In this document: positions 1 through 37,429 of the stretch, one piece after another
Layout: each line of letters opens with the position of its first letter
Numbering within the stretch: the first letter of the stretch is position 1
Assembly: GCA_028826165.1 (NCBI GenBank)
Contig: JAPDFW010000053.1
Span: forward strand, 186,001 to 250,000
DNA length: 64,000 nt
DNA from: Anaeramoeba ignava BMAN
Lineage: Eukaryota; Protista; Anaeramoebae
Reading direction: 5' to 3'
Translations under genes and position numbers: made by a program
Notes under the pieces: generated by a model
Seen by the model: the letters and a program-made list of their open reading frames with translations, nothing else
What the model was told of the DNA's origin: nothing
The model's database searches: none

Positions 1-262
1 TATATTTATATTTATATTTATATTTAGATTTTGATTTTTGATTTATATTTATATTTATATTTAGATTTAGATTTTGATTTAGATTTAGATTTAGATTTAG
101 ATTTAGATTTAGATTTAGATTTAGATTTAGATTTAGATTTAGATTTAGATTTAGATTTATATTTATATTTATATTTAGATTTAGATTTAGATTTAGATTT
201 AGATTTAGATTTAGATTTATATTTAGATTTTGATTTAGATTTAGATTTAGATTTAGATTTAC
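1..262. repeat. (TTTAGA/TTTATA)n microsatellite inside the GPCR intron
   Basis: Hexamer repeat visible directly; lies 3' of the GT donor at 262-261 on the minus strand. Confidence 0.9.
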
Positions 263-774
263 AATAAGAAGAGCTCTTTCAGTTGAAAAACACCTTTTAA
301 AAAAAAAAGAAAAAATTTTTAAATAATTAATTAAAAAATTTTTAAAATAATTACTTACCAATAAGTCTTTGAATCATCAGGATCATTAAGAAAAGCAGCA
401 AAAATAACAAAAAAAATAACAGTTATCCACATAAATAAATGAAGAAATTTAGGGATTTTATTTAAAAAATTGACAGGATAAGATTTAACAATTTTCAAAT
501 AAGATAATAAAGAAATAGAAGCAGACCAAAATTGTGAACTTGTCCCGAATCCAGCAATTAATTCAAATTGAATCCTACAAATAACTTTATTTGAATGGCC
601 TGGCAAAAAATAACTTATTGATTGAATAAAATCATAAACTGATAAAATAAACACTAATTTTCTATAGAAAAATCTTGTTTCTTTAAAAAATAAATAGACT
701 AAGATTATTAATAAAGCTCCAGCCATTCCAAAACTTGCTCCAATTATTGTACATACTTCTTCTGAATTAGTCAT
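263..774 (-). CDS. cAMP-receptor-like (Dicty CAR/Crl family) 7TM GPCR, 5' part; gene continues past the window start
   Basis: Exon 1 774-359 (MTNSEEV...RFFYRKLVFILSVYD...C.IQ...SQFWSASI). GT-AG intron 358-294. 31-nt exon 293-263 (WCFSTERALLI), then GTAAAT donor into a (TTTAGA)n intron. Paralog of 1140-3865 with the same exon structure. Confidence 0.8.
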
Positions 775-1139
775 TTGAATTTTTTTTTTAAAAGTGAATT
801 TTTTTTTTTTGATTAAATCTTATTGATTCAAATAGAAAAATAAAAATTTAAATGAAAAATGAAAAATCAAAAATTATCAAAAAAAATTTTTCTCTTTGTA
901 AATAAATAAATAAATAAATAAAGATTATTCAAAGGAATTTATAAAATGAAAATGAAAGAAGATAAAAATGGATCAAAATATTTTTTCCACTTTTTTTTTT
1001 TAAAATCAAAATAGAAAATTGAAAATTGTTTTTATTTTGAAAATCAATTTAGAAAGTAAAATTGAACAAAAAAAAAAAAGAAAACAAAAATAATTATAAA
1101 AGAAAAAATATTGAAAGAATTTTTTTCATCCAAAAAAAA

Positions 1140-3865
1140 TTAATTTGAATCAGAATTTAAATTTAAATCTTGAGAAACTTCAGTGAGATTTTTTCCATCG
1201 CCAATTAAAGATTCATTGATATTATTTTCAGTGAAATTTTGAAAACTTGAAATTTTCTCAAATGATTGATTTTTTTGAGGAATTTTTTTAGTTAATTTTG
1301 TTCTTATTTCTGGATCAAAAATAACAAATATCAAAAAATCCCAAAATCCTTGTGAAATTGAAAGTAATCCTTGAAGAACATCAATAAATGTTATTTCTGA
1401 AGCATTTGGATATGCCAAATTTCTAATTCTCTTTTTTTTTTTTTTTTTTGAATTTAATTTTATATTTTGATTTTGATTTTGATTTTGATTTTGAAATTGA
1501 TTTTGAAATTGAAATTGATTTTGAAATTGAAATTGATTTTGAAATTGATTTTGAAATTGATTTTGATTTTGAAATTGATTTTGATTTTGAAATTGATTTT
1601 GATTTTGAAATTGAAATTGAAATTGAAATTGAAATTGATTTTGAAATTGAAATTGAAATTGAAATTGAAATTGATTTTGATTTTGAAATTGAAATTGATT
1701 TTGAAATTGATTTTGAAATTGATTTTGATTTTGATTTTGAAATTGAAATTGAAATTAAAATTAAAATAAATATCAAAAAAGATATACTCTAAATGATGTT
1801 GGAATAAAAATTATAATATAAATTAAAGGAACAAAACTCATTCTTAATTCAATCCAAAATTTATTAAGTTGACTAATTCTTTTGTTATAATTTCCCTTGA
1901 TATTTTGTTGATAAAACTTTTTTAATCGAATAAATATTAAAATGCAAAATACCAAACAAACCAATAAATAAAACCAATTAAAGGCATAGAGCGGCTAAAA
2001 TAAAATAATTTGGAAAGAAAATGTAAATTTTAATTTAGATTTTGATTTTGATTTTGATTTTGATTTTGATATTGATTTTGAAATTGAAATTGAAATTGAT
2101 TTTGAAATTGAAATTGAAATTGATTTTGAAATTGATTTTGAAATTGATTTTGAAATTGAAATTGAAATTGATTTAGATTTTGAAATTGATTTTGATTTTG
2201 AAATTGAAATTGAAATTGATTTTGATTTTGAAATTGATTTTGAAATTGATTTTGAAATTGATTTTGAAATTGAAATTGATTTTGAAATTGAAATTGAAAT
2301 TGAAATTGATTTTGAAATTGATTTTGATTTTGATTTTAATTTTAAATTTTGATTTTGATTTTGATTTTGATTTTGATTTTGATTTTGAAATTGATTTTGA
2401 TTTTGATTTTGAAATTGAAATTGATTTTGAAATTGATTTTGAAATTGATTTTGAAATTGAAATTGATTTTGAAATTGATTTTGATTTTGAAATTGATTTT
2501 GATTTTGATTTTGATTTTGAAATTGAAATCGATTTTGAAATTGATTTTGATTTTGAAATTGAAATTGAAATTGATTTTGAAATTGAAATAGAAATTGATT
2601 TTGATATTGAAATTGAAATTGAAATTGAAATTGAAATTGAAATTGATTTTGAAATTGATTTTGATTTTGAAATTGATTTTGAAATTGAAATTGATTTTGA
2701 AATTGATTTTGATTTTATATTTTGAAATTGATTTTGAAATTGATTTTGATTTTATATTTTGAAATTGATTTTTAAATTGATTTTTAAATTGATTTTGAAA
2801 TTGAAATTGATTTTGAAATTGATTTTTAAATTGATTTTTAAATTGATTTTGAAATTGAAATTGATTTTGAAATTGATTTTGATTTTGAAATTGATTTTGA
2901 TTTTGATTTTGATTTTGATTTATATTTTGAAATTGATTTTGAAATTGAAATTGATTTTGATATTGAAATTGAAATTGATTTTGAAATTGATTTTGAAATT
3001 GAAATTGATTTTGATTTTGAAATTGATTTTGATATTGAAATTGAAATTGATTTTGATTTTGATTTTGAAATTGAAATTGAAATTGATTTTGAAATTGATT
3101 TTGATTTTATATTTTGAAATTGATTTTTAAATTGATTTTTAAATTGATTTAGATTTTGAAATTGAAATAGATTTTGAAATTGAAATAGATTTTGAAATTG
3201 ATTTTGATTTTGATTTTGAAATTGATTTTGATTTTGATTTTGATTTATATTTTGATTTTGATTTTGATTTTGATTTTGAAATTGATTTTGAAATTGAAAT
3301 TGAAATCGATTTTAATTTTGAAATGGAAAAAGAGTTATAAAAGAAGTGATACAATAAGATATTTTTCTGAAGTAGAAATACACCTAAAAATTTAAAAAAC
3401 AATTCAAATTAAAAAAAATCAATCTAAAAATTAAATTTCAAAAAAAAAATACCAATAAGTGCCTGATTTATTTGGATTAGGCAGAAAGAAAGAGAGAATA
3501 AATAATGGAGTAACAGTAACCCACATAAAAATATGAAAAAAAATGTAAAGTTTATGAAGAAATTTTTCATGAAAAGATTTCACAACTTTCAAATATGACA
3601 AAATTGAGATCGCTGCAGACCAATATTGAGAAGTGGTTGCAAAAAGTGCCACTAATGTAAATTGTGTTCTACATATTCCTGAACCTTTTTGTCCAGGCAA
3701 AACAAAGGTTAATGATTGAAGTAAATCGTATACTGATAAAACGAAAATTAATTTTCGATAAAATATTTTGGTTTCTTTAAAATAAAGATAAATGATTATT
3801 ATGCAAAGTGCTCCTAATATTGCTAAAATTGATCCTATAAGTGTTGCTATTTCTTCAGAACGCAT
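1140..3865 (-). CDS. cAMP-receptor-like 7TM GPCR, complete, 4 exons
   Basis: Exons 3865-3453, 3383-3353 (WCISTSEKYLI), 1994-1788 (PLYAFNWFYLL...FIPTSFR) and 1430-1140 (RIRNLAYP...SQGFWDFLIF). All joins are GT-AG and in frame. The TM7 QG motif is typical of the CAR/Crl family. Confidence 0.8.
1445..3310. repeat. (TTTTGA/AATTGA)n microsatellite filling introns 2 and 3 of GPCR 2
   Basis: Blocks at ~1460-1770 and ~2030-3310; source of many spurious low-complexity ORFs. Confidence 0.9.
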
Positions 3866-3974: not shown

Positions 3975-5410
3975 AATTGATTAATTGATTGATTTAAGAT
4001 TGATTGATTGATTTATTAATTTTAATTGATTGATTAATTGATTGATTAATTGATTGATTAATTGATTGATTGATTAATTGATTGATTGATTGATTGACAA
4101 TTGATTTATTGACAATTAATTGATTGATTGACCAATTAATTGGTGAATTTAATTGATTTGGATTAATTATTGATTTAATTAATTGACAATTGATTGATTG
4201 ATTATATTAACAATTATTGATTGATTAATTGAAAATTATTGACAATGAAATTGAAAATTGATTGACAATTGATTGACAATTGACATTGACAATTGGACAA
4301 TTTGATTGTAATTTTGCCATTGTAATTAATAAATTGGTATAATTTGAATGGACAATTGACCAATTGGTAATTTGACATTAATCAATTCAATTTGGTATTT
4401 TAAAATTTTGGAAAATTTCAAATTTTTTTCATTATCATCAATTTATTGACAAATTAATGATTGTAAAATTATCAAATTATTGGTGAATTTATTGGTAATT
4501 GAAATTGATGAAATTGATTAATTGATTAATTAATTAATTGATTGATAATTGATTAATTGATGAATTGAATAAAGCCAATTGATTAATTTTATTAATTACA
4601 TTTGAAATTTTGACAATTTATGACAATTTTGACCAATTGACAATTGAATAAATTAGTATTTTGACAATTATTGGTGATTTAATTGATTGAATTCCAATTA
4701 AATTTCTAATTGACAATTGATTATTTAATTTATATTTTTGGATTATCAATGAAAATTGGACAATCATTAATTTATTTGATTGCCAATTTGGTAAGATTGG
4801 AAATTAATTGAAAAATTGAAATTAATTATGAAATAATAATGGTGATTATTAAATTAAATTATTTGGTAATTTATAATTTTTACAATTTGATTCATTATTT
4901 TGAAAATTGATTTAAAAGCCCATTTTAATTATTGGTTTTTGAATGATTGATTATTGATTTATTATTATTCATTGATTTAATAATAGGTTAAATTTTAAAT
5001 TTTTCAATTTTGGTTTTCTATTTTTGGATTTAAATTGAAATTAAATTGGACAATTGAATTGAAATTGATTTTGGACATGGTTGAATTTAAATTGAAATTA
5101 ATTAAATATTTTTGATTAATGATGAATAATTAAATGATTTGATTAATTAAATATTGGATTTTATTGATTATTTTTATGATTTACCTTCATTAAAAGATTA
5201 TTGATTTAAATTGCCCAACATTATTGATTTTTGAATATAATTGATTATTTGGGAATTGATTATTCATTGATTTATTTGATTGGTTCAATTCCTTTAAATT
5301 TTGATTTGATTTTGTTTTTATTTTTGGATTTTGATTGGAAATTGATTGAAATTGGAATTAATTGATTGATTGATTTTGGAATTAAATTGAAATTGATTAA
5401 ATATTTTTGA
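3975..5410. repeat. (ATTG)n satellite grading into garbled copies of the ARM exon-intron unit
   Basis: ATTG repeats at 3975-4250. Recognisable ARM-unit fragments at ~4910-5030 (aaagccc...taataggtt) and ~5180-5330 (ttaccttcattaaaaga...gcccaaca...gggaa...ggttcaattcc). Confidence 0.6.
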
Positions 5411-5491: not shown

Positions 5492-8400
5492 TTAATTGTT
5501 TTGTAATTTTTCTAAAGCCCATTTTCCTTTTTCTTGAATATCTTGATTATTTGGGAAATTATTCATTGATTTAATAATAGGTTCAATTCCTTTTAAATTT
5601 CTAATTTCAATTTTGTTTTCTATTTATTTGAAAATTGAAATTGAAATTGAAATTGAAATTGAAATTAATTATTTTTGGATTTTTGGAAATAAATTGAAAT
5701 TGATTAAATATATTTTTGATTAATAATTAATAATAAATAATTGATTAAAATATTTGGATTTTTGATTATTTTTATTTACCTTCATTAAAAGACAGATTAT
5801 TTAAAGCCCAACATCCTTGTTTTTGAATATCTTGATTATTTGGGAAATTATTCATTGATTTAATAATAGGTTCAATTCCTTTTAAATTTCTAATTTCAAT
5901 TTTGTTTTCTATTTATTTGAAATTGAAATTGAAATTGAAATTGAAATTAATTATTTTGGATTTTTGGAAATAAATTGAAATTAATTAAATATTTTTTTGA
6001 TTAATAATTAATAATAAATAATTGATTAAAATATTTGGATTTTTGATTATTTTTATTTACCTTTATTAACAGCAATATTCGATAAAGCCCAACATCCTTT
6101 TTCTTGAATATCTTTATTATTTGGGAAATTATCCATTGATTTAATAATAGGTTCAATTCCTTTTAAATTTCTAATTTCAATTTTGTTTTCTATTTTTTTG
6201 AAAATAAATTGAAATTAATTTTTTTTTGGATTTTTTTGGAAATAAATTGAAATTAATTAAATATTTTTTTGATTAATAATTAATAATAAATAATTGATTA
6301 AAATATTTTAATTTATAATTTTATTTATTTTTTATTTTTATTTACCTTCATCAATAGCAATATTCAATAAAGCTCCACATCCATATTTTTGAATATCTTG
6401 ATTATTTGGGAAATTATTCATTGATTTAATAATAGGTTCAATTCCTTTTAAATTTCTAATTTCAATTTTGTTTTCTATTTTTTTGGAAATAAATTTGAAA
6501 TTGAAATTGAAATTGAAATTAATTTTTTTTGGAATTTTTTGGAAATAAATTGAAATTAATTAAATATTTTTTTGATTAATAATTAATAATAAATAATTGA
6601 TTAAAATATTTTAATTTATAATTTTATTTATTTTTGATTATTTTTGATTTACCTTTATTAAAAGACAGATTATTTAAAGCCCAACATCCTTTATATTGAA
6701 TATCTTGATTATTTGGGAAATTATTCATTGATTTAATAATAGGTTCAATTCCTTTTAAATTTCTAATTTCAATTTCGTTTTCTATTTTTTTGGAAATAAA
6801 TTGAAATTGAAATTGAAATTGAAATTAATTTTTTTTTGGATTTTTTTGGAAATAAATTGAAATTAATTAAATATTTTTTGATTAAATTAATAATGAATAA
6901 TTGATTAAAATATTTGGATTTTTGATTATTTTTAATTACCTTTATCAACAGCAATATTCGATAAAGCCCAACATCCATATTTTTGAATATCTTGATTATT
7001 TGGGAAATTATTCATTGCTTTAATAATAGGTTCAATTCCTTTTAAATTTCTAATTTCAATTTGGTTTTCTATTTTTTTTGGGAAATAAATTGAAATTGAA
7101 ATTGAAATTGAAATTAATTTTTTTTGGATTTTTTTGGAAATAAATTGAAATTAATTAAATATTTTTTTGATTAATAATTAATAATAAATAATTGATTAAA
7201 ATATTTAGATTTTTGATTATTTTTTATTTACCTTTATTAAAAGACAGATTATTTAAAGCCCAACATCCTTTATATTGAATATCTTGATTATTTGGGAAAT
7301 TATTCATTGATTTAATAATAGGTTCAATTCCTTTTAAATTTCTAATTTCAATTTCGTTTTCTATTTTTTTGAAAATAAATTGAAATTAATTTTTTTTTGG
7401 ATTTTTTTGGAAATAAATTGAAATTAATTAAATATTTTTTGATTAAATTAATAATGAATAATTGATTAAAATATTTGGATTTTTGATTATTTTTAATTAC
7501 CTTTATCAACAGCAATATTCGATAAAGCTCCACATCCATATTTTTGAATATCTTGATTATTTGGGAAATTATTCATTGCTTTAATAATAGGTTCAATTCC
7601 TTTTAAATTTCTAATTTCAATTTGGTTTTCTATTTTTTTTGGGAAATAAATTGAAATTGAAATTGAAATTGAAATTAATTTTTTTTGGATTTTTTTGGAA
7701 ATAAATTGAAATTAATTAAATATTTTTTTGATTAATAATTAATAATAAATAATTGATTAAAATATTTTAATTTATAATTTTATTGATGTTTTATTTTTAT
7801 TTACCATTATCAGCAGCAATATTCAATAAAGCCCAACATCCTTGTTTTTGAATATCTTGATTATTTGGGAAATTATTCATTGATTTAATAATAGGTTCAA
7901 TTCCTTTTAAATTTCTAATTTCAATTTTGTTTTCTATTTATTTGAAAATTGAAATTGAAATTGAAATTGAAATTAATTTTTTTTTGGATTTTTGGAAATA
8001 AATTGAAATTAATTAAATATTTTTTTGATTAATAATTAATAATAAATAATTGATTAAAATATTTTAATTTATAATTTTATTGATGTTTTATTTTTATTTA
8101 CCATTATCAGCAGCAATATTCAATAAAGCCCAACATCCTTGTTTTTGAATATCTTGATTATTTGGGAAATTATTCATTGATTTAATAATAGGTTCAATTC
8201 CTTTTAAATTTCTAATTTCAATTTTGTTTTCTATTTATTTGAAAATTGAAATTGAAATTGAAATTGAAATTAATTTTTTTTTGGATTTTTTTGGAAATAA
8301 ATTGAAATTAATTAAATATTTTTTTGATTAATAATTAATAATAAATAATTGATTAAAATATTTGGATTTTTGATTATTTTTTATTTACCATTATTAAAAG

Positions 8401-11400
8401 CAGCAATATTCTTTAAAGCCCAACATCCTTGTTTTTGAATATCTTGATTATTTGGGAAATTATTCATTGATTTAATAATAGGTTCAATTCCTTTTAAATT
8501 TCTAATTTCAATTTGGTTTTCTATTTTTTTTGGGAAATAAATTGAAATTGAAATTGAAATTGAAATTAATTTTTTTTGGATTTTTTTGGAAATAAATTGA
8601 AATTAATTAAATATTTTTTGATTAATAATTAATAAGAAATAATTAATTAAAATATTTGGATTTTTGATTATTTTTTATTTACCATTATCAACAGCAATAT
8701 TCTTTAAAGCTCTACATCCTTTATATTGAATATCTTGATTATTTGGGAAATTATTCATTGATTTAATAATAGGTTCGATTCCTTTTAAATTTCTAATTTC
8801 AATATTGTTTTCTATTTTTTTGGAAATAAATTGAAATTGAAATTGAAATTGAAATTAATTTTTTTTTGGAATTTTTGGAAATAAATTGAAATTAATTAAA
8901 TATTTTTTGATTAATAATTAATAAGAAATAATTAATTAAAATATTTGGATTTTTGATTATTTTTATTTACCATTATCAACAGCAATATTCTTTAAAGCTC
9001 TACATCCTTTATATTGAATATTTTCATTATTTGGGAAATTATTCATTGCTTTAATAATAGGTTCGATTCCTTTTAAATTTCTAATTTCAATATTGTTTTC
9101 TATTTTTTTGGAAATAAATTGAAATTGAAATAAATTGAAATTGAAATTAATTATTTTTTTGGATTTTTTTGGAAATAAATTGAAATTGATTAAATATTTT
9201 TTTGATTAATAATTAATAATAAATAATTGATTAAAATATTTTAATTTATAATTTTATTTGTTTTTTATTTTTATTTACCATTATCAACAGCAATATTCAA
9301 TAAAGCCCAACATCCATATTTTTGAATATCTTCATTATTTGGGAAGTTATTCATTGATTTAATAATAGGTTCAATTCCTTTTAAATTTCTAATTTCAATT
9401 TTGTTTTCTATTTTTTTGGAAATTGAAATTGAAATTGAAATTAATTTTTTTGGATTTTTGGAAATAAATTGAAATTGATTAAATATTTTTTTGATTAATA
9501 ATTAATAATAAATAATTGATTAAAATATTTTAATTTATAATTTTGTTTTATTTTGATTTAATTACCATTATCAATAGCAATAAACCCTAAAGCTCCACAT
9601 CCTCGATATTGAATATCTTCATTATTTGGGAAATTATTCATTGATTTAATAATAGGTTCAATTCCTTTTAAATTTCTAATTTCAATTCTGTTTTCTATTT
9701 TTTTGGAAATAAATTGAAATTGAAATTAATTTTTTTTTGGATTTTTTTGGAAATAAATTGAAATTAATTAAATATTTTTTGATTAATAATTAATAATAAA
9801 TAATTGATTAAAATATTTGGATTTTTGATTATTTTTTAATTACCTTCATTAAAAGACAGATTATTTAAAGCCCAACATCCTTGTTTTTGAATATCTTCAT
9901 TATTTGGGAAGTTATTCATTGATTTAATAATAGGTTCAATTCCTTTTAAATTTCTAATTTCAATTTGGTTTTCTATTTTTTTGGAAATAAATTGAAATTG
10001 AAATTAATTTTTTTTGGATTTTTTTGGAAATAAATTGAAATTAATTAAATATTTTTTTGATTAATAATTAATAATAAATAATTGATTAAAATATTTGGAT
10101 TTTTGATTATTTTTTAATTACCTTCATTAAAAGACAGATTATTTAAAGCCCAACATCCTTGTTTTTGAATATCTTGATTATTTGGGAAATTATTCATTGA
10201 TTTAATAATAGGTTCAATTCCTTTTAAATTTCTAATTTCAATTCTGTTTTCTATTTTTTTGATATTTTTTTTTTGGAAAATAAATTGAAATTGAAATTGA
10301 AATTGAAATTGAAATTAATTTTTTTTGGATTTTTTTGGAAATAAATTGAAATTAATTAAATATTTTTTGATTAATAATTAATAATAAATAATTGATTAAA
10401 ATATTTGGATTTTTGGTTATTTTTATTTACCATTATCAACAGCAATATTCGATAAAGCTCTACATCCTTGTTTTTGAATATCTTGATTATTTGGGAAATT
10501 ATTCATTGATTTAATAATAGGTTCAATTCCTTTTAAATTTCTAATTTCAATTTTGTTTTCTATTTTTTTGGAAATAAATTGAAATTGAAATTAATTTTTT
10601 TGGATTTTTGGAAATAAATTGAAATTGATTAAATATTTTTTTGATTAATAATTAATAATAAATAATTGATTAAAATATTTTAATTTATAATTTTGTTTTT
10701 TATTTTGATTTAATTACCATTATCAATAGCAATAAACCCTAAAGCTCCACATCCTCGATATTGAATATCTTCATTATTTGGGAAATTATTCATTGATTTA
10801 ATAATAGGTTCAATTCCTTTTAAATTTCTAATTTCAATTCTGTTTTCTATTTTTTTGATATTTTTTATTTTTGGAAAATAAATTGAAATTGAAATTGAAA
10901 TTGAAATTGAAATTAATTTTTTTGGATTTTTGGAAATAAATTGAAATTGATTAAATATTTTTTGATTAATAATAAATAATAAATAATTGATTAAAATATT
11001 TGGATTTTTGATTATTTTTTATTTACCTTTATTAAAAGACAGATTATTTAAAGCCCAACATCCTTGTTTTTGAATATCTTCATTATTTGGGAAATTATTC
11101 ATTGCTTTAATAATAGGTTCAATTCCTTTTAAATTTCTAATTTCAATTTGGTTTTCTATTTTTTTGGAAATTGAAATTGAAATTGAAATTAATTTTTTTG
11201 GATTTTTGGAAATAAATTGAAATTAATTAAATATTTTTTTGATTAATAATTAATAATAAATAATTAATTAAAATATTTGGATTTTTGATTATTTTTATTT
11301 ACCATTATTAAAAGCAGCAATATTCGATAAAGCTCCACATCCTTTTTCTTGAATAACTTGATTATTTGGGAAATTATTCATTGATTTAATAATAGGTTCA

Positions 11401-14400
11401 ATTCCTTTTAAATTTCTAATTTCAATTTTGTTTTCTATTTTTTTGGAAATAAATTGAAATTGAAATTAATTTTTTTTTGGAATTTTTTGGAAATAAATTG
11501 AAATTAATTAAATATTTTTTTGATTAATAATTAATAATAAATAATTAATTAAAATATTTTAATTTATAATTTTATGTTTTTTATTTTTATTTACCATTAT
11601 CAGCAGCAATATTCCATAGAGCTCCACATCCTTTATATTGAATATCTTCATTATTTGGGAAATTATTCATTGATTTAATAATAGGTTCAATTCCTTTTAA
11701 ATTTCTAATTTCAATATTGTTTTCTATTTATTTGAAAATTGAAATTGAAATTGAAATTGAAATTAATTTTTTTTTGGATTTTTGGAAATAAATTGAAATT
11801 AATTAAATATTTTTTTGATTAATAATTAATAATAAATAATTGATTAAAATATTTTAATTTATATTTTGATTTATAATTTTATTTATTTACCATTATCAAC
11901 AGCAATATTAATTAAAGCTCCACATCCTTTTTCTTGAATATCTTCATTATTTGGGAAATTATTCATTGATTTAATAATAGGTTCAATTCCTTTTAAATTT
12001 CTAATTTCAATTTTGTTTTCTATTTTTTTGATATTTTTTTTTGGAAAATAAATTTGGAATTGGAATTGAAATTAATTTTCTCATTTCATTTTATAAATTA
12101 AATTTTTTAAAATTTTTGATGAGAATTAGAAATGTAAAAATTATGGAAATAAATATTTGTTTTTTCTTATAAATTTTCTTACCTGAATTAATTGCAATAT
12201 TAGTTAAAATTGAAATAGATTTTTCTTGAATAATTTGATTATTTGGATAATTATTGATTGTATTAATAATTGTTTTAATTCCATTTAATTTAGAAATTTC
12301 AATTCCTTGTAATTTCCGATTTTCTATTTCTTCAGCTTTTTGTTTTGTGAAAGAAGAAAAAGAAAGAGATTTAAATTTGCAAATAATTCATTTTCTTTTT
12401 TTTTTTGATTTTTGATTTGTTAAAAAAAGAAATTAATTTACTTTTTAATCCTCCTGAAAATATTAATAAAGCTTCAGATGCTTTTATTTGAATATCTTCA
12501 TTATTTGGGAAATTATTCATTACATTTATAAGAGGTTCAATTCCATTAAATTTTTTTATTTCTATTTGATTTTCTTTAAATTTCAATTATTATTATTATT
12601 ATTATTTTTAATATTATTATTCAAAAATTGTTTCAAAAAAATAAATATTTTACCTTCATTTTCTTTTGCAAATTTTTGTAAAATAAAACATCCATTTTCT
12701 TGAATAATTTCATTATTTGGAAATTTATTCATACATTCGACAATAAAAGGAAAATTAAATTTCAATTTAATTTTTGGTTTAAATTAAATTAAATTAAATT
12801 AAATTAAATTAAATTAAATTTTCTTTTTTTTTTGTTTTTGAGTTTGATTTACTTTGATCTTGTTGTTGAATTGAATTTGAAAGATCTTGTAAAAAATTTG
12901 TTGTTTTTTCTGGTGATTGAAGAATTTCTATTTTTAATTTTTGATTTTCAATTTCATTTTGAATATTTTTGATTTGTGGATTAATTTTTGAATAAAATTC
13001 ATTTTTTCTTTTTTCAATTTCATTGTTAAAATCTTGAATTATTTTTTCAATTTCATTTAAATTTTCATTTTTAATTTCAATTTCTTGAATTTTCTTTTCA
13101 ATTTTTTCTAAATATTTATTTTTTTTAAATTTAATCTTATTTTTTATTTCTTGAATAATTTTTTCTAAATTTTCATTTTCATTTTCAATTTTGTTTTGTT
13201 GAATAAATTCTTTAAATTCTTGAATTTCTTTCTTTTTTTTTTGTTCAAATTCATTCTTAAATTGTTGAATTGTTTCTTCAAATAATTTTAAATCTTCTTC
13301 TGTTTTTAATTTGGGAAAATTTATTAATTCTTGATATTTTTTATCAATTTCTTCCAAATTTATATTCTTTCTTTTTTTAAATTTATTTTGAATTTCTTCA
13401 ATTTTTTTTTGAAAAATTTCTAAATCTTTTTTTCTATTTTGTTCAAATAAATCTTTCAAATTAATAATTCTTTTATTAAATTCTTGTAAATATTCTTTTT
13501 TCATTTTTTCATCATTTTGAATTAATTGTTGAAATTTTTCTTGAATTTCTTTTTTCCATTTTTCATATTCTTCTTTAATTTCTTCAATTTCTTTTTTAAT
13601 TTTTTCTAATTTTTCTTTTTCTTTTTGGATTATTCTTTTTTTCTCATAAAGTTGATTAATTTGAAATTCTGTTATTTGATTTTCTTGTTCAAATTCTTGA
13701 ATATTTGAATTTAATAAAACAGTTTTATTTTGGAGTTGGGAAATGAATTTATTTTTGATTTGTTGAATTTGAAATTGATTAATTGATTTTGTTTGTGAAA
13801 TTTGATTTAATAAATTTGAAAAAGAATTTTCATTTTCATTTATTTCATTTTCATTTTCATTTTCATTTTGATTTGTTTCAAATTTAATTAATTTTATCAA
13901 TTTTTTTTGATTATTTTGATTCCATTTTTGTTCAATTTGTTGAATAATTTGAAGTTGATTTGGAATATTTTGATTTAAAGAAATTAATCCAATAAAATTG
14001 TAAATTTGATTTTGATTTAAATATTTATCAAAATTTGGATTTGAAATGATAAATTGAATATTTTGGAAAATAAATTTTTCACAATTTTGAGAAAGATTTT
14101 GTGAATTAATTTCTTGAGATTTGAAATAAATTTCCAAAATATTTTGAATATTAAAAATTGATTGAATTTCAAGTTCAATTTTGAATTGAATTTCTTTTAA
14201 TTTAATTTGATTTGCAAATTTAAAATATTCATCAAATTTTCGTTTATCAAATTTAAATTTTCCATTATAAAAAAATTTAATAATTGGTTTAACAATTTCA
14301 GAACTAAAATTATTAAAATAAATTGAATTAAATTTATTTTCTCTTCTGTTTATCATAAAATATTTTGAACGAGCTTCTAAAATTGATTTATGACAAGGAA

Positions 14401-15259
14401 TTGAAATTTTATCTTTTCCACAATAAATTTGAAAATCTGAAGTTTTTTTATTTCCAAACATTAAACCAATTTGTTTATTTGCTTGTTTTATTAAGAATTT
14501 ATTGAATTTTTTAATTTTGGATTGAATTTCTTCATTTTGATTTTGATTTTGATTTTGATTTGATTTTGATTTTGATTTTGAATTTGAATTTGAATTTGAT
14601 TTTGATTTTGGCTTATGCTTTGAATGATGTTTTGATTTTGATTTTGAATGATGTTTTGAATGATGTTTTGAATGATGTTTTGAATTTGAATTTTGTTTTG
14701 AATCAATTTGTTTTGAATCAATTTGTTTTGAATGATGTGTTGATTTTGATTTTGATTTTGATTTTGATTTTGGCTTATGCTTTGAATGATGTTTTGAATG
14801 ATGTTTTGAATGATGTTGATTTTGATTTTGATTTTGATTTTGATTTTGATTTTGATTTTGATTTTGATTTTGATTTTGCTTTGAATGATGTTTTTGAATG
14901 ATGTTTTGAATGATGTTTTGAATGATGTTGAATGATGTTTTGATTTGATTTTTGTTTTTAATTTTTTGATTTTGATTTTTGTTTTTTGATTTTGATTTTG
15001 ATTTTGATTTTTGATTTTCAATTTGATTTTGATTTTGATTTTGATTTTGTTTTTTGATTTTATTTGATTTTGAATTTGATTTTTAATTTGATTTTGTTTT
15101 TGATGTTTTTTTGATTTTGATTTTTGTTTTGAATGATTTTTTTGAATGATGTTTTGAATTGATTTTTGGATTTTTCTTTTTGATTTTGATTTTGATTTTA
15201 ATTTGATTTTTTTTATTTCATTTTTTTTTGAATTAATTTTTTTTTGGAGAATCACTCAT
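5492..15259 (-). CDS. BTB/POZ - coiled coil - armadillo-repeat protein, one ARM repeat per exon (~26 ARM exons)
   Basis: Large exon ~14530-12852 has a BTB (SDFQIYCGKDKISIPCHKSILEARSKYF...FFYNGK) and a long E/K/Q coiled coil. Three divergent ARM exons follow (~12760-12654, 12573-12442, 12335 or 12323-12183), then 22 near-identical ARM exons, then terminal exon 5619-5492 ending QEKGKWALEKLQNN*. Probable start ATG at 15259 (MSDSPKK), followed by a low-complexity N-terminus with indels. No canonical AG is visible for the exon ending at 12654. Confidence 0.8.
5780..12019 (-). repeat. Tandem array of 22 exon+intron units (~270-310 bp); each exon 129 or 132 nt, phase 1-1, one armadillo repeat
   Basis: Exons: 5780-5908, 6061-6189, 6346-6474, 6653-6781, 6940-7068, 7232-7360, 7501-7629, 7805-7933, 8102-8230, 8389-8520, 8683-8811, 8971-9099, 9279-9407, 9566-9694, 9844-9972, 10122-10250, 10431-10559, 10718-10846, 11027-11155, 11303-11434, 11595-11723, 11891-12019. 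Each is flanked by AATAG| and G|GTAA. Consensus ENxIEIRNLKGIEPIIKSMNNFPNNQDIQxxGCxALxNIAxxx. Confidence 0.92.
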
Positions 15260-15652
15260 TTTTCTTTTTATTTTAATTTTATTTTTAAAAAGGAAAATTA
15301 TTTTTAATTGGAATAAATAAAATAAATATTTGAGAAATAATAATAAATCAATAATAAAAATAATTTTCTTTTCATTTTTATTTTGGAATTAAATTTAAAT
15401 TGTAATTTTTTATTGATAATTTTTTGTTTAAATAAAATTTGAAAATTTATTTTTCCTCTTTTTTTGTTTATTGAAATAATAATAGATTAATAAGTAATTA
15501 ACAATTATTTTGTTTTTATTTCATTTATATTTTATATTTATATTATTATTTATTATTAAATTTGATTTTTATTTTGTTAAATTAAATAATAAAAAAATAT
15601 TTACTTAATTTTAAATTTTGAAAAGAAAAAAATGAAAAAAAATAAAAAATGG

Positions 15653-15960
15653 AATAAAGAATATTAAATAGTTAAATTTAGAATTAATCCTATTTTATAT
15701 ATTTTATTAATATTTCTTTATTTAAAATAATATAAAATAATTCCCAATAATTTAATAAAATTAATAAAATATTTTAATTAATTTATTTCAAAAATGAATA
15801 AAGAATATTAAATAATTAAATTTAGAATTAATTCTATTTTATATATTTTATTAATATTTCTTTATTTAAAATAATATAAAATTATTCCCAAAAATTTAAT
15901 AAAATTAATGAAATATTTTAATAAAGAAAAAATTGAATAAAGAATATTAAATAATAATTT
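15653..15960. repeat. ~144-bp AT-rich tandem repeat (2+ copies); inverted homolog at 29521-30070
   Basis: Unit starts aataaagaatattaaata at ~15653, ~15797 and ~15937. Its reverse complement matches 29521-29645. Confidence 0.75.
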
Positions 15961-16044
15961 AAATTGGATTTCTTTTATTTTAAACTGAATTAAATTTTTC
16001 ATTTAAAAAATTAATATTTTTATTTTATTTTTTATTTATTGATT

Positions 16045-16610
16045 AATATTGAAAAGAAAATATTTAAAAATAAAACAATAAATTATTATTTTTAATAATA
16101 AAATTGAATTATAAATTATTTTTAAATTAATTTATAAATTAAATATTAAATTAAACTTATTCTTATTTTTTATATTTCGATTGTTTTAATATTGAAAAAG
16201 AAAATATTGAAAAATAAAACAATAAATTATTATTTTAATAATAAAATTGAATATTAAATTATTTTTAAATTAATTTCTAAATTAAATATTAAATTAAACT
16301 TATTCTCATTTTTATATTTGATTTTTAATATTGAAAAAGAAAATATTGAAAAATAAATTAATAAATCATTATTTTAATAATAAAATTGAATATTAAATTA
16401 TTTTTAAATTAATTTATAAATTAAATATTAAATTAAACTTATTCTTATTTTTTATATTTGATTGATTAATTTTGAAAAAAGAAAATATTGAAAAATAAAT
16501 TAATAAATTATTATTTTAATAATAAAATTGAATAATAAATTATTTTTTAAATTGATTTCTAAATTAAATATTAAATTAAATTTATTCTCATTTTTTATAT
16601 TTGATTGATT
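16045..16610. repeat. ~140-bp AT-rich tandem repeat, 4 copies
   Basis: gaaaa(a)gaaaatatt...ttaaatattaaattaaacttattc recurs at ~16051, 16193, 16333 and 16474. Confidence 0.8.
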
Positions 16611-17523: not shown

Positions 17524-20500
17524 ATGCAACAACTAAAATTCATTTCTTTAATTTCAAAAGTTTGTACTGAACTTGAAAATAATGTTGGAATTAAACAAAA
17601 ATTTGTTGCAGAATTTATTGTAGAAATTTGGGAAAATTCAAAAACATTGGAAGAATTTAAACAAAATTTAAAAGAAAAACAAGCAGAATTTCCAGAAAAT
17701 TTTGTAACAAATATATATAATATAATAAGTAGATTACATCCGAATGCAAAAAAGAAAGAAAATTTAAAAGAAAATTTAAAAGAAAATTTAAAAGAAAAAG
17801 AAAATTTAAAAGAAAATGATGTAATTCTAAATAAGAATGACTCAACTTTAGATCAAATTAATTTAAAAGAAAATGAACATAAACCTCATTCTCATCATTC
17901 ACATTCACATCATTCTCATTCACATCATCATTCACATTCACATCATCATAATGACCATAATCATTATAAGGAAAATAATTCACGACACAGAAATACTCAA
18001 AACCGTTGGGATCAAAAAGAAAAAATAGAGAAAAAAATTGAAGAAGAAGATGAAGTGAAAAAAAATGCGCATTTTTATAACGAAAGGGAAGCCATTGATG
18101 AAGAGCCCATACAATATAAAATATATTCAGGAGAAGTTACTGGAATAAGAGACTTTGGGTGTTTTGTGCGACTTGATGGAGTTCGTGGAAAACGAGAAGG
18201 GCTCTGTCACATCACGCAAATGAAGAAAACTGGAAGAGTTTTAGATCCACATGAAATTGTACATAAAAAGCAGAGAGTGTTTGTGAAAGTTCTTGCTTAT
18301 GCGGGAAGTAAAATTAGTTTATCAATGAAGGAGGCTGATCAATCAAATGGTGAAGATCTTTTTCCAAGAGAAATTGTTGATTCTGAAAAGAAGACTTCTT
18401 TATATGATCCATTAAGAAGTAATCCAACAAGACCTAATGATTTGAATGAAGGCGCTATGGCGTTAAGCATGTATGCATTTAACAAGGAGAATCAAAACGA
18501 ATTTTATTTATTTCAGGAATTTATATTGAATTTGAAATTCAAATTGAATTTAAAAATATTATTGAAATTTATATTTATTTTGATTAAAACGAAAATCGGA
18601 AAAAAAAAACAAACAGTCATCAAACATAAAAATTTCTATTATATTATTATTATATTATTATTATTATATTATTATCATTATATAACAACAAAATATCGCA
18701 ACTGCATAATTTTTTTTTATTCGCAAACAAAAACAATCAGGCAAGAAAAAAAGCACACAAAACGAGACCTTCCAACACCCGAAAGATGGATCCAAAAGCA
18801 GCTTGAGTCTGCAGGGGTTCTAGACATTCGTGAGCAAACAAACTACAACGAAGAAACAGGAGTACTTGATCTAGATATGGAAGACGAGATGGAGGAGGAT
18901 CTAGAAATCGAGCTTAACGATGAAGAGCCGACATTTCTGCGGGGACAAACACGGCACACAATGGCGCTATCGCCGATCAAAATCTTGAAAAATCCTGATG
19001 GATCACTTGTTCGCGCAGCAATGACCCAAGTTACGTTGGCAAAAGAACGCAAGGAAGTTCGAGAGCAGCAAAGAAACCAAATGCTGGAAAGTATCCCCAA
19101 AGATATTAACCGTCCTTGGATCGATCCACTTCCGGAAGAAGGAGAACGCCATTTGGCACTGGATCTGCGCGGATTGGGTATGGCACAAGAAGATCTTCCA
19201 GAATGGAAAAAATCCACTTTTGGGAAAACAGTCGCATACGGAAAGAAGACCAATTTGTCAATTAAGGAGCAGCGCGAATCACTGCCGATCTTCAAGCTGC
19301 GAAACGAACTGATGAGCGCAATTAGGGACAATCAAGTGCTGATTTGCGTAGGAGAAACAGGATCAGGAAAAACAACGCAGATCACGCAATATCTTGCGGA
19401 AGACGGATATGCAAAAGAAGGACGGATCGGATGCACGCAGCCAAGACGAGTCGCCGCAATGAGCGTTGCGAAGAGAGTTAGCGAGGAGTTTGGCTGCCGT
19501 TTGGGTCAAGAGGTTGGATATTCAATCAGATTTGAAGATTTCACAAGTAATGAAACCGTGATCAAATACATGACGGATGGAATGCTTCTTCGGGAGTGCT
19601 TGATAGACCCTGATCTGACTGGATATTCCGTTGTAATGCTTGATGAAGCGCACGAACGTACGGTGCACACTGATGTTCTTTTGGCCTTCTTAAAGAAACG
19701 GTGAAAAGAAGACCTGATCTAAAATTAATTGTTACTTCGGCAACACTGGATGCAGAAAAAGTTTTCCGATTTCTTCTTCGAATGTCCCATCTTCACCATC
19801 CCAGGTCGCAACTACCCCGTTGAGATCTTATACACAAAAGAGCCCGAATCAGACTATCTCGACGCAGCGCTCATCACAGTCATGCAGATCCATCTGGCAG
19901 AGCCACCGGGAGATATCCTATTGTTTTTAACAGGACAAGAAGAAATCGGCACTGCTTGTCAGATTCTTTTTGAGCGTGTAAAATCACTTGGTCCAAAAGC
20001 GCCTGAGCTGATGATCCTCCCCGTTTATTCTGCACTTCCTTCTGAGATCCAAACCCGAATTTTCGAACCAACACCAAAGGGATCAAGAAAGGTTGTTATC
20101 GCAACAAACATTGCGGAGACTTCATTAACAATTGACGGAATATATTATGTGATCGATCCAGGGTTTGTGAAGCAGAAATGCTACAACCCAAGATTGGGGA
20201 TGGATTCGCTTGTTGTAACACCGATCTCACAGGCAGCAGCAAGACAGCGCGCAGGGCGAGCCGGAAGAACAGGTCCTGGAAAATGTTTTCGACTTTACAC
20301 AGAATCTGCTTATCATAATGAAATGTTCCCAAATACAATTCCCGAGATCCAGCGCACAAATCTCGGCACAACTGTTCTCACCCTCAAAGTGCTTGGAATC
20401 AACGATCTCCTCCACTTCAATTTCATGGATCCGCCGCCGACTCAATCCCTCGTTTCCGCCATGGAACAGCTCTACATGCTCGGCGCTCTCGATGAGGAGG

Positions 20501-21263
20501 GTTTGCTTACGAAATTGGGAAGACAAATGGCTGAATTCCCCCTCGATCCTCCTTTGTCTAAGATGCTTATTTCCTCCGTTTCTTTCGGTTGTGCTGAGGA
20601 AATTCTTACCATCGTCTCAATGCTTTCCGTTGAATCCGTTTTTTATAGACCAAAAGAAAAACAGGCTCAAGCTGACCAGAAAAAAGCAAAGTTTATTTCT
20701 CCTGATGGCGACCATCTTACTCTCCTCAATGTCTATGAATCCCTGGAAAAAGAAATAAATTCAGTAATCCTTGGTGCTTTGAGAATTTTATCCAGCCAAG
20801 ATCCCTCAGAAGAGCTCAAGAAATCAGAAAGCAAATTCTCCCAATTTTGGATCGGCAAAAATTGGACGTTGTTTCTTGTGGAACTGCAACTGTTCCTATT
20901 ATCAAATCAATTGTTTCTGGCTATTTTACAAAAGCCGCTAAAAAAGACCCTCAAGAAGGTTATAAAACCCTTGTTGAAGGTCAAACTGTTTATATCCATC
21001 CAAGCTCAGCTCTTTTCCAAGTTAAACCTCAATGGGTTGTTTATCACGAACTCGTTCTTACTTCAAAGGAATATATGAGAAATGTTTCTTTTATTGACCC
21101 TAAATGGCTCGTTGAATTCGCCCCAAAGTTTTATAGAATTGCTGATCCTACTAAATTGACTAGACGTAAAAAATCTGAAAAACTTTTACCTTTATGGGAT
21201 AGGTTTCTTCAAAATCAAGATTCTTGGAGACTTTCTAAACAAAAGAGGATTAGAAGAAATTAA
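17524..21263 (+). CDS. PRP22: Pre-mRNA splicing DEAH-box helicase Prp22/DHX8
   Basis: N-terminal [10 protein letters not shown]1 domain, [35 protein letters not shown]2 and OB domains. Intron 18471-18740. Homopolymer frameshifts at ~19682, ~19760 and ~20742-20755. Confidence 0.95.
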
Positions 21264-23599: not shown

Positions 23600-26500
23600 A
23601 TGAAACAATTCAAAAACAAACATATCAAACATGCTTGTTTAAATCCAAATATTTCAATTGAAATTATTAAATATTTAATTTCATCAGGAATTAATATTAA
23701 TTCAAAAACAAATCAAAATCAAACAGTTTTACATATTGCTTGTAGAAATGAAAATATTTCACTTGAAATTATTAAATTTTAATTTCATCAGGAATTGATA
23801 TTAATTCAAAAATAAAAGATAAAAATAAAACAGCTTTACATATTGCTTGTAAAAATGAAAATATTTCACTTGAAATTATTAAATATTTAATTTCATCAGG
23901 AATTGATATTAATTCAAAAACAGATTGGGGTTGGACAGCTTTACATATTGCTTGTAAAAATGAAAATATTTCACTTGAAATTATTAAATATTTAATTTCA
24001 TCAGGAATTGATATTAATTCAAAAACAAATTTAAATGAAACAGTTTTACATATTGCTTGTTTAAATCCAAATATTTCATTTGAAATTATTAAATATTTAA
24101 TTTCATCAGGAATTGATATTAATTCAAAAACAAATTATAATCAAACAGTTTTACATTATGCTTCTTTAAATCCAAATATTTCACTTGAAATTATTAAATA
24201 TTTAATTTCATCAGGAATTGATATTAATTCAAAAACAAATTTGGGTTTAACAGCTTTACATATTACTTGTAAAAATGAAAATATTTCCATTGAAATTATT
24301 AAATATTTAATTTCATCAGGAATTGATATTAATTCAAAAACAAAACAAAATAAAACAGCTTTACATATTGCTTGTAAAAATGAAAATATTTCACTTGAAA
24401 TTATTAAATATTTAATTTTATCAGGAATTAATATTAATTCAAAAACATATCTAAATCAATCAGCTTTACATTATGCTTGTGAAAATAAAAATCCAAATAT
24501 TTCACTTAAAATTATTAAATATTTAATTTCATCAGGAATTGATATTAATTCAAAAACATATTGGGGTTGGACAGCTTTACATATTGCTTGTAAAAATGAA
24601 AATATTTCCATTGAAATTATTAAATATTTAATTTCATCAGGAATTGATATTAATTCAAAAACAAATCAAAATGAAACAGTTTTACATTATGCTTCTTTAA
24701 ATCCAAATATTTCACTTGAAATTATTAAATATTTAATTTCATCAGGAATTGATATTAATTCAAAAACAAATCAAAATCAAACAGTTTTACATTATACTTG
24801 TTCTAATCCAAATATTTCATTTGAAATTATTAAATATTTAATTTCATCAGGAATTGATATTAATTCAAAAACAAATCAAAATGAAACAGCTTTACATTAT
24901 GCTTGTAAAAATGAAAATATTTCCATTGAAATTATTAAATATTTAATTTCATCAGGAATTGATATTAATTCAAAAATAAAAGATAAAAATGAAACAACTT
25001 TATATATTGCTTGTAAAAATAAAAATATTTCACTTGAAATTATTAAATATTTAATTTCATCAGGAATTGATATTAATTCAAAAACAAATCAAAATGAAAC
25101 AGCTTTACATATTGCTTGTAGAAATAAAAATATTTCATTTGAAATTATTAAATATTTAATTTCATCAGGAATTGATATTAATTCAAAAACAAATCAAAAA
25201 TGAAACAGCTTTACATTATGCTTGTAAAAATGAAAATATTTCCATTGAAATTATTAAATATTTAATTTCATCAGGAATTGATATTAATTCAAAAATAAAA
25301 GATAAAAATGAAACAACTTTATATATTGCTTGTAAAAATAAAAATATTTCACTTGAAATTATTAAATATTTAATTTTATCAGGAATTGATATTAATTCAA
25401 AAACAAATCAAAATGAAACAGTTTTACATATTGCTTGTGAAATAAAATATTTCACTTGAAATTATTAAATATTTAATTTCATCAGGAATTGATATTAATT
25501 CAAAAACAAATCAAAATGAAACAGTTTTACATATTGCTTGTAAAAATAAAAATGTTTCACTTGAAATTATTAAATATTTAATTTCATCAGGAATTGATAT
25601 TAATTCAAAAACAAATCAAAATGAAACAGCTTTACATTATGCTTGTAAAAATGAAAATATTTCACTTAAAATTATTAAATATTTAATTTCATCAGGAATT
25701 GATATTAATTCAAAAACAAATCAAAATCAAACAGCTTTACATATTGCTTGTGAAAATAAAAATATTTCACTTGAAATTATTAAATATTTAATTTCATCAG
25801 GAATTGATATTAATTCAAAAACAAATCAAAATCAAACAGCTTTACATATTGCTTGTGAAATTCAAATATTTCACTTGAAATTATTAAATATTTAATTTTA
25901 TCAGGAATTGATATTAATTCAAAAACAAATGAAAATCAAACAGCTTTACATATTGCTTGTTCTAATCCAAATATTTCACTTGAAATTATTAAATATTTAA
26001 TTTCATCAGGAATTGATATTAATTCAAAAACAACTCGAAATGAAACAGTTTTACATATTGCTTGTGACAATTTAAATCAAAATATTTCACTTGAAATTAT
26101 TAAATATTTAATTTCATCAGGAATTGATATTAATTCAAAAACAAATAAAAATCAAACAGCTTTACATATTGCTTGTTCTAATCCAAATATTTCACTTGAA
26201 ATTATTAAATATTTAATTTCATCAGGAATTGATATTAATTCAAAAACAAATCAAAATCAAACAGTTTTACATATTGCTTGTGACAATAAAAATATTTCAC
26301 TTGAATTTTTTGGATATTTAAATTCATCAGGAATTAATATTAATCCAAAAACAAATGAAAATGAAACAATTTTGGATTATACTTGTAAAAATAAAGATAT
26401 TTCACTTGAAATTATTAAATATTTAATTTCATCAGGAATTGATATTAATTCAAAAACAAATCAAAATATAACAGCTTTACATATTGCTTGTTTAAATAAA

Positions 26501-27637
26501 AATATTTCACTTGAAATTATTAAATATTTAATTTCATCAGGAATTGATATTAATTCAAAAACAATTTGGGGTTGGACAGCTTTACATATGGTTTGTGAAT
26601 ATCGAAATATTCAATTTATCAAGTTATTAATGAAGAATGATGTAAATATTTTTGATTTAGAAGATTATCGAATTAATAAAGAAATAATTAATTTATTTCC
26701 AAAAATTTATTCAATTAATGAAGATTTAAATAATTTTTTAAAATCAAGTCAAAATGAAAATGAAAATGAAAAATTTACAGATTTAGAAATTAAAACAAAT
26801 GATTATTTCAAATTTAAAGTTCATAAAATAATTTTATTAACAAGATTTGATAATGATAAATTAATTTTACAAAAATTTATCAATATTTGTAATAGAAAAC
26901 CAAAAAGAGATGTTCAATTAGCTTTAAATTTTCTTTATACTGGATTTACTAATTTTGATTATTTTATTCAAAGATTTCAAAATTTCATCAATTATAAAAA
27001 TCAAATGAAAGAAATTGATGAATCAAAACAATATCCATATCCATATCCATATCCATATCCATTTCAAAATGAAAATGAAAATGAAAAAATAAAAAAATTT
27101 GAAAATTTAAGAAAAACAGAAATTGAAAAAGAAAATGAAATTGAAGAACAAGAAAATGAATTAATGAAAGATATTTTTGAAAAAATTGGAATTGAATCAA
27201 ATTGGATTGAAACAAAAAAAGGAAGAAAAGGAATAATAAAAGATTTATCAAAATTATATCAACAAAATGAAACAAAAGATTTTAAAATAATTTGTTCAGA
27301 AAATGAAAATGAAATTCAAAATCAAAATCAAAATAAAAAAGAAATTAAAGTTCATAAATTAATATTAATAATAAGAAGTGAATTATTTAAAGGAATGTTT
27401 TTAAATGTTCAAGATCAATCAAATCAAGTTCATGATTATTCACGAAAATCATTTGAAACAATAAATCAATTTATTTATTTCCTTTATCATGATGAATTTG
27501 AAGAAGAAACAAAAATAACAAAAGAAAATCTTGAAGAATATGTTGATATAAAAGATTATTATCAATTAAATCCAAAATCATTAATTGGAGAATTATTACT
27601 TGATTTTGATTATTTTAAAAATATTTTTTTCAATTAA
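23600..27637 (+). CDS. Ankyrin-repeat (~28 near-identical 35-aa units) + C-terminal double BTB-like protein; start unresolved
   Basis: 105-nt coding unit (SSGIDINSKTxx[N/G]xTALH[I/Y]ACxNxNISLEIIKYLI) from ~23630 to ~26600, with no introns. C-terminus has FTDLEI..FKVHKIILLTR and KDFKII..KVHKLILIIRSELFKGMF..FLYHD. Frameshifts at ~23779, 25200, 25441 and 25860. 5' region 23350-23600 is garbled. Confidence 0.85.
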
Positions 27638-29214: not shown

Positions 29215-29520
29215 AAACTTTTTTCCATTCTTTTTTAAAATTTAATTCAATTTTCTTTTACTTTCAATCAAATAAAATTCTTCAAATTAATAAATATGAA
29301 ACAAACCAAATTTCAAATAATTTTAAATTAATTTAAAATTATTATTAAAAATTTTGAAAAAAAAAATGAAAAATTATTTTTTTAGATATTAAAACAAAAT
29401 AAAAATTGGGAATAGAAATTAATAATGATTAAATTTCAATTATTTATTATTAGATAAATTTATAATGAAAACAATTATAATTTATTATTAAAAACTATTC
29501 AAATTCAATTTTTCTCTTTA

Positions 29521-30070
29521 TTAAAATATTTTATTAATTTTATTAAATTATTTGGAATAAGTTTATATTATTTTTAAATAAAGAAATATTAATAAAATAT
29601 ATAAATCAAGATTAATTCTAAATCTAATTATTTAATATTCTTTATTTAATTTTTGAAATAAATTAATTAAAATATTTTGTTAATTTTATTTAATTATTTG
29701 GAATAAGTTTATATTATTTTAAACATAAAATTAAATCTTAATTTAATTTTTAAACTGATTTCCAAATTAAATATTAATTCAAATTAATTTTCATTTTTTA
29801 AATAAATTAATTAAAATATTTTATTAATTTTATTAAATCATTTAGAATAATTTTATATTATTTTAAACATAAAATTAAATCTTAAATTAATTTTTAAACT
29901 GATTTCTAAATCTAATTATTTAATATTATTTATTTAAAATTTGAAATAAATTAATTAAAATATTTTATTAATTTTATATAATTATTTGGAATAATTTTAT
30001 ATTATTTTAAACATAAAATTAAATCTTAAATTAATTTTTAAATTGATTTCTAAATTAAATATTAATTCAA
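29521..30070. repeat. ~145-bp AT-rich tandem repeat, ~4 copies, inverted relative to 15653-15960
   Basis: ttaaaatatttt(a/g)ttaattttat...ggaataa recurs at ~29521, 29667, 29811 and 29955. Confidence 0.75.
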
Positions 30071-30131
30071 ATTAATTTTCATTTTTTTCATTTTTTTCAT
30101 TTTTTTCTTTTCATTTTTTGTTTCTTTTTAA

Positions 30132-37240: not shown

Positions 37241-37429
37241 TTTTTTTTCAAAGCAACTAAAAGAAATAAAACGAAATAAAACGAAATAAAACGAAATAAA
37301 AACAAGAAATAAAAACAAGAAATAAAAACAAGAAATAAAAAGAAATAAAAAGTGGAATTTAAAAAAAAAAATCTTTTCTTTTTCAATCCAAAAATTAATC
37401 AAAGTCAATTTCAAACAATTTAAAAAATT

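Follow-up and report, generated by a model that had tools for sequence, protein, structure and literature searches.

Does a long run of short repeats in the genome of Anaeramoeba ignava, an anaerobic amoeba with sulfate-reducing symbionts (PMC11550330), encode a diversified receptor, and if so, what does that receptor read and how does its diversity arise? The run lies in a window of 64,000 nucleotides (strain BMAN, contig JAPDFW010000053.1, positions 186,001 to 250,000) with an A+T content of about 80%, where TRF describes it as a 289-bp tandem array of 22.4 copies at 5513–12030. An initial annotation, made from the letters alone, had read the array as 22 exon–intron units, each exon 129 or 132 nt long, bounded by AG and GT, in phase 1 at both ends, stop-free and encoding one armadillo (ARM) repeat. 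It had proposed that the units are attached to an upstream BTB and coiled-coil exon as a Cullin-3 (Cul3) substrate receptor reprogrammed by splicing or recombination.

Layout of the armadillo array and its gene

Parsing of the minus strand bears out the exon architecture. The array resolves into 22 exons, from 12019–11891 down to 5908–5780, 20 of which are 129 nt long and two (those starting at 11434 and 8520) 132 nt; 19 of the 22 are distinct in sequence. All 22 are preceded by TAG and followed by GTAA, are in phase 1 at both ends, lack stops and encode a single ARM repeat each. The 21 introns within the array are 140–180 nt long and roughly 90% A+T, vary in length by indels, and carry stops in every case if retained. 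As had been remarked, the ORF track passes over the array, with no ORF of at least 120 aa in the window's list beginning inside it. The capping exon with its stop was likewise recovered, at 5619–5492 with TAA. Upstream, the BTB domain is confirmed by a Pfam match (E 1e-9) in the ORF at 14461–12809, while the coiled coil of that exon, a long charged helical region, was judged from sequence alone. Three divergent ARM exons between head and array were absent from the earlier list. The elements of the gene are the following:

14462–15259, minus strand: N-terminal region of low complexity, 798 nt (a multiple of 3), with the probable start codon at 15259; frame broken by compensating indels in the assembled copy
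12853–14461, minus strand: BTB domain, 3-box-like helices and long coiled-coil-like region (Pfam BTB, SPOP alignment), with a phase 1 splice donor after base 12853
12654–12770 (start approximate), minus strand: divergent ARM exon a; acceptor AG missing in the window copy
12442–12573, minus strand: divergent ARM exon b, 132 nt, phase 1-1; counterpart exon in the C69 and C33 paralogues
12183–12335, minus strand: divergent ARM exon c, 153 nt, phase 1-1 (exon parsing)
5780–12019, minus strand: 22 near-identical ARM exons and their introns (TRF, exon parsing, Pfam)
First bases of array exons 1–11, minus strand: 12019, 11723, 11434, 11155, 10846, 10559, 10250, 9972, 9694, 9407, 9099
First bases of array exons 12–22, minus strand: 8811, 8520, 8230, 7933, 7629, 7360, 7068, 6781, 6474, 6189, 5908
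5492–5619, minus strand: terminal capping ARM exon ending in TAA; similar caps close arrays on C61, C81 and C123
4880–5340, minus strand: two decayed exon-like copies 3' of the stop, with frameshifts and stops; relics or poor consensus

The spliced product would be a BTB/3-box/coiled-coil head followed by about 25 ARM repeats, by arithmetic a protein of roughly 1,900 aa. An internal in-frame AG located 30 nt into each exon was considered as the main acceptor and rejected, because the first 30 nt keep frame in 103 parsed exons (a set chosen for the outer acceptor, which bears on this rejection); the same 30 nt are included in public models of paralogues. A 254-aa ORF at 14491–15255 was set aside as a by-product of the low-complexity region. 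Beyond the cap, at 3975–5340, degraded copies resembling ARM exons grade into ATTG-type low-complexity sequence, reflecting either decay or poor consensus.

Compensating indels, beginning with one in an A-run, separate the ATG at 15259 from the frame of the BTB domain; the equivalent start is in frame with BTB in paralogues on C123, C69 and C33. The acceptor AG of divergent exon a, missing in the window copy, is present in all eight paralogues examined, and skipping this exon preserves frame. The indels in the start region and the missing acceptor may be consensus errors or real lesions.

ARM repeats are units of about 42 residues, folded as three helices that stack into a superhelix, with a conserved Asn in helix 3. 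This Asn is found in 20 of the 22 array exons. In searches run exon by exon, a single array exon exceeds the cut-off of Pfam Arm, at 21.8 bits and E 2e-4, and weak matches to Arm or ARM_LRRK2 come from most of the rest of those tested; a Vac8 match to the ARM repeats has an E value of 1e-27. A fold predicted from a single sequence was discarded (pLDDT 46). The structure prediction that the initial annotation had called for was obtained for four repeats of a paralogue, P0005 (residues 665–835), using 120 aligned relatives. This AlphaFold model (pLDDT 97.6) shows three-helix ARM units, with three helices per 43 residues, and it matches importin-alpha, catenins and designed ARM proteins with Z of 21–23 and rmsd of 1.7–2.4. 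Judged by these matches and by the paralogue model, the predicted fold of the repeats is armadillo, as had been claimed.

Elsewhere in the window, Pfam identifies these genes:

17524–21078, plus strand: S1-DEAH helicase (Prp22-like)
27766–29214, plus strand: BTB-BACK-TLDc
33374–36031, minus strand: VPS9
36113–37435, minus strand: PB1-UBA (NBR1/p62-like)
56493–60476, plus strand: CH-spectrin

At 23632–27637 on the plus strand, about 28 near-identical 35-residue ankyrin repeats run into a BTB domain, with several frameshifts as assembled. Variation among the 13 of these repeats that were read is highest in the last four residues, the hairpin loop, and the ankyrin array is a second case of a repeat with constant scaffold and variable face on a BTB head. 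Two tandem membrane-protein genes, GPCR-like by eye, occupy 1–3865 on the minus strand; their introns contain long stretches of hexamer repeats that reach as much as 1.3 kb. Between genes, tandem repeats with a period of 143–144 nt lie at 15645–16607 and 29520–30086.

Related arrays across the genome and the probable output of their heads

The array had been treated as a single locus, a view that a search of the genome for other loci, also recommended at the time, does not sustain. One array exon used as query gave 150 scored matches among 1,443 candidates, and a 27-nt pattern from the exon core has 257 matches genome-wide, compared with zero for the control. Counted from the coordinates of the listed matches, the A. 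ignava genome holds at least 30 arrays. Sequences of 40 loci entered the analysis, further matches being covered by their coordinates. Nineteen sit just downstream of a related BTB head, and two, on C68 and C110, come after a RING-kinase exon and an SH3 exon (P0005, P0155). The 129/132-nt exon, its splice sites and the cap recur in 15 paralogous stretches with parsed exons, among which the array period varies by locus from about 223 to 370 nt. Older relatives consist of a BTB domain with a few divergent ARM repeats, or of an ARM-RCC1-BTB arrangement. Because arrays are found on both BTB and RING-kinase-SH3 heads, the repeat module is attached to at least two ligase-type heads; and because the window's array belongs to a set of 30 or more, a large share of the diversity lies in the germline, distributed among paralogues. 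The public protein set yielded no more than two annotated proteins with near-identical ARM repeats, and most family members appear to be absent from it.

The two RING-kinase-SH3 genes that end in an ARM exon array are located at C68:277179–282000 and C110:50242–54400, and for the RING-kinase head as such there are dozens of paralogues. In P0033, a RING-kinase protein, a different and divergent ARM-like unit of 38 residues has been amplified about 14 times with little variation; here the first divergent repeat has been amplified on its own account. The genome has a very large BTB complement, with 3,711 first-look candidates, and about eight cullin loci, counting cullins of any type.

What would such a head do with a bound protein? 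Cul3 adaptors use the alpha3-beta4 loop of the BTB domain together with a 3-box (PMC3597819), and the ARMC5-CUL3-RBX1 ligase establishes that a protein with ARM repeats and a BTB domain can be a Cul3 substrate receptor (PMC9226510). The head in the window can be aligned with SPOP as far as and including the 3-box region (E 3e-5). Its alpha3-beta4 loop is four residues shorter than that of SPOP, and the position of the key hydrophobic residue (Met233 in SPOP, Phe130 in KLHL11) is occupied by Arg, with the next Glu kept and the register across the gap uncertain. The short loop and the Arg are common to all nine close paralogues read. Pfam BACK has no match in the window protein and has one in the relative P0010. 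Of the Cul3 adaptor proposed at first, the BTB domain is thus confirmed and the 3-box putative, while the loop departs from the pattern, and given this atypical Cul3-contacting loop we do not file the head as a Cul3 adaptor. Considering that the alternative head has a RING and that ARMC5 offers a precedent (PMC9226510), the head nevertheless probably works like one.

The same residues could be taken to mean that the family consists of variable binders whose output is not ubiquitination, with the BTB and coiled coil confined to dimerisation or scaffolding and the protein acting as a sensor or a sequestering trap. The Arg stands where SPOP and KLHL11 insert a hydrophobic residue into Cul3, the loop is four residues short in nine paralogues, and other members bear a kinase and SH3, all of which would suit such an output. 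We consider it unlikely, however, since a 3-box-like region and the following Glu are retained and the RING of the alternative head makes both head types ligase-type modules.

Diversity of the predicted groove and how it probably arises

The initial annotation had emphasized that any exon could be skipped, duplicated or swapped without breaking the frame. All exons are indeed phase 1-1, and this interchangeability stands; symmetric phase is needed for any tandemly duplicated internal exon, however, and is therefore no sign of cassette splicing. The corresponding proposal is that the array is a cassette library, from which alternative splicing or frequent mitotic rearrangement would produce many receptors per locus among cells or clones. 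It could draw on the in-frame interchangeability of every exon, on a number of repeats (22) that surpasses the need of one short peptide, and on brown-algal ROCO LRR exons of like design, which are alternatively spliced (PMC11378527). A further point comes from P0035, a transcript-derived protein in EukProt that is identical to the C74 paralogue across the BTB head and the first ARM exons, evidence that in an older family member splicing joins such exons to the head. Inside an ARM repeat, P0035 changes locus and continues with C24-like sequence (C74:232252–234218; C24:230376–230916), as a library might predict; the switch is probably an assembly chimera, a join in assembly being its simplest cause, with a recombinant allele as the alternative. 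Against the library, RNA structure across exon, intron and exon was not significantly above shuffles (z −0.94, one intron folded), the near-identical introns leave little for choosing among exons, and dozens of paralogues already provide diversity. We regard a cassette library as quite unlikely. If it did exist, exon skipping and mitotic rearrangement within a cell or clone would supply an anticipatory form of intracellular recognition controlling symbionts or invaders, and this, too, we think quite doubtful.

The residues that differ between repeats cluster on the predicted groove, whose positions we take to be 4, 26, 29, 30, 33, 36, 37 and 40 in designed-ARM numbering. They map to exon codons 3, 27, 30, 31, 34, 37, 38 and 41, assigned by sequence register and helical wheel, a choice that was made after seeing the exon translations and was not blind. 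Positions 29, 30 and 33 line the selected pocket of designed ARM binders (PMC11228518), and on the helical wheel the variable positions of helix 3 fall within one arc of 20–140 degrees. The eight groove codons account for 12.2 of the 16.0 bits of total entropy in the array exons, and entropy is 1.52 bits at groove positions compared with 0.12 at other polar positions (p 9e-5). Nucleotide diversity at codon positions 1 and 2 of the groove codons is 0.352, a 12- to 14-fold excess over the yardsticks of 0.029 (framework positions 1 and 2), 0.024 (framework third positions) and 0.025 (intron core), and the diversification expected of a predicted binding face is thereby borne out. At groove codons, 23 extra amino acids were counted and zero synonymous variants, the framework having 6 and 3, respectively (Fisher p 0.017); over 103 exons this contrast has a p of 0.006, and 90 different groove combinations occur among the 103 exons parsed. 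These tests of selection are counting methods, the Nei-Gojobori pS at groove codons having been inflated by multi-base codon changes and replaced by the direct yardsticks. Since relaxed constraint would leave diversity near the neutral yardsticks and the observed value is twelve times above them, the data support diversifying or balancing selection on the groove residues. The placement of the variable residues suggests that the predicted groove may bind an extended peptide.

The same excess bears on whether the repeats simply turn over in the absence of selection for new specificities, with a groove that is merely unconstrained or a copy that is a pseudogene of a once-functional family. The lesions of the window copy (start indels, missing acceptor) and the broken exons of some paralogues, such as C61 and C33, are what this account would predict. 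Yet groove diversity far exceeds the neutral yardsticks instead of equalling them, all 22 exons are intact whereas the array introns hold many indels, and the genome assembly combines Nanopore R9 reads and Pilon polishing (PMC11550330), a procedure that is indel-prone in A-runs. Turnover or decay of this kind is therefore very unlikely.

Introns are near-identical along the array, and identical or near-identical units occur both side by side and apart (14/15, 16–17/18–19, 5/9). Similarity between units does not drop with distance. By site incompatibility the array exons are recombinant mosaics: incompatible site pairs make up 17% within 10 nt and 54% beyond 30 nt, and a PHI-like test, which recurrent selected changes can inflate, gives p 0.014 in the window and 2e-4 across all loci. 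For 10 of the 22 exons the nearest neighbour is equally close or closer in another locus, and none is identical between loci. Together, the near-identical introns, identical units and mosaic exons are in keeping with gene conversion or unequal crossing-over inside single loci and perhaps from one locus to another, and the earlier suggestion of recombination among units is upheld. That the array is itself an assembly expansion or a mosaic of paralogous repeats is scarcely credible: it is a many-copy repeat assembled from long reads and contains identical units (14/15, 5/9, 17/19), but its 19 distinct in-frame exons have codon-structured differences, no exons are identical between loci and the period is locus-specific (about 223 to 370 nt), although the copy number could be slightly off.

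We therefore favor, with a probability of roughly 55%, the reading that this locus belongs to a large and young A. ignava family of germline variable intracellular ARM binders, grown by unequal recombination and probably feeding ubiquitin ligases. In such a family, splicing would join the BTB/3-box/coiled-coil head to the 25 or so ARM repeats, units of exon plus intron would multiply and be kept alike through gene conversion or unequal crossing-over, and selection would hold differing residues at the helix-3 groove positions. Neighboring runs of repeats would then form different peptide-binding pockets, as ARM structures suggest. The head would most likely link bound proteins to ubiquitination, through a cullin in BTB members and directly in RING members, and the driver would most likely be conflict with foreign proteins of bacteria, symbionts or viruses. 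Diversity would be germline, built up over generations.

Comparison with known systems

The literature searched, which excluded subscription papers, contains no description of the A. ignava ARM array family, and the family is not described in the main text and supplements searched of the genome paper (PMC11550330). Database entries for A. ignava relatives bear the label 'protein aardvark', after a beta-catenin-like protein of Dictyostelium with which they have the ARM repeat type in common; the label is automatic, given by similarity, and is silent on the exon arrays and their variation.

Among known receptors, the closest in design discussed here are the brown-algal ROCO (LRR) and NB-ARC-TPR candidate receptors, in which, likewise, each exon encodes one repeat, exons are shuffled, the repeat domain is under diversifying selection and multigene birth and death takes place (PMC3341825, PMC11378527). 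Their heads are ROC-COR or NB-ARC, whereas the family in A. ignava, an unrelated lineage, combines an ARM scaffold with BTB or RING-kinase-SH3 heads. Having no LRR or TPR and no ROC-COR or NB-ARC, it resembles the brown-algal type and is not a member of it. Alternative splicing has been reported for the algal receptors and is hypothetical for the A. ignava arrays.

ARMC5 and plant ARIA/ABAP1 also carry ARM repeats and a BTB domain in one chain, a likeness of domain content. These proteins are single or low-copy and conserved, with ARM before BTB; in the A. ignava family BTB comes first, and the repeats are about 90% identical and hypervariable. The expanded F-box and MATH-BTB adaptors of nematodes and plants have a constant part that docks to the ligase and a substrate-binding part under positive selection, and have been proposed to target foreign proteins. 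Their diversity lies between whole genes, whereas that of A. ignava lies also between the modular exons of one gene. Dscam has tandemly duplicated exons that encode variable binding modules, spliced in a mutually exclusive fashion through docking-selector pairing. What the A. ignava arrays visibly share with Dscam is the gene layout.

Designed armadillo repeat proteins (PMC11228518) share with this family the fold (Z 21.8 to 5mfd) and a series of near-identical repeats varied at the helix-3 pocket. They are engineered, with a 42-residue repeat, whereas the A. ignava repeats are natural, 43–44 residues long, and their peptide binding is predicted. The family would be a natural counterpart of the designed armadillo libraries, its scaffold staying constant while the pocket positions that engineers randomise vary. 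It would add to the known exon-shuffled variable receptors a case with a new scaffold and a ligase-type output, in a protist that houses symbionts, and would offer a testable handle on the recognition of foreign proteins by single-celled eukaryotes.
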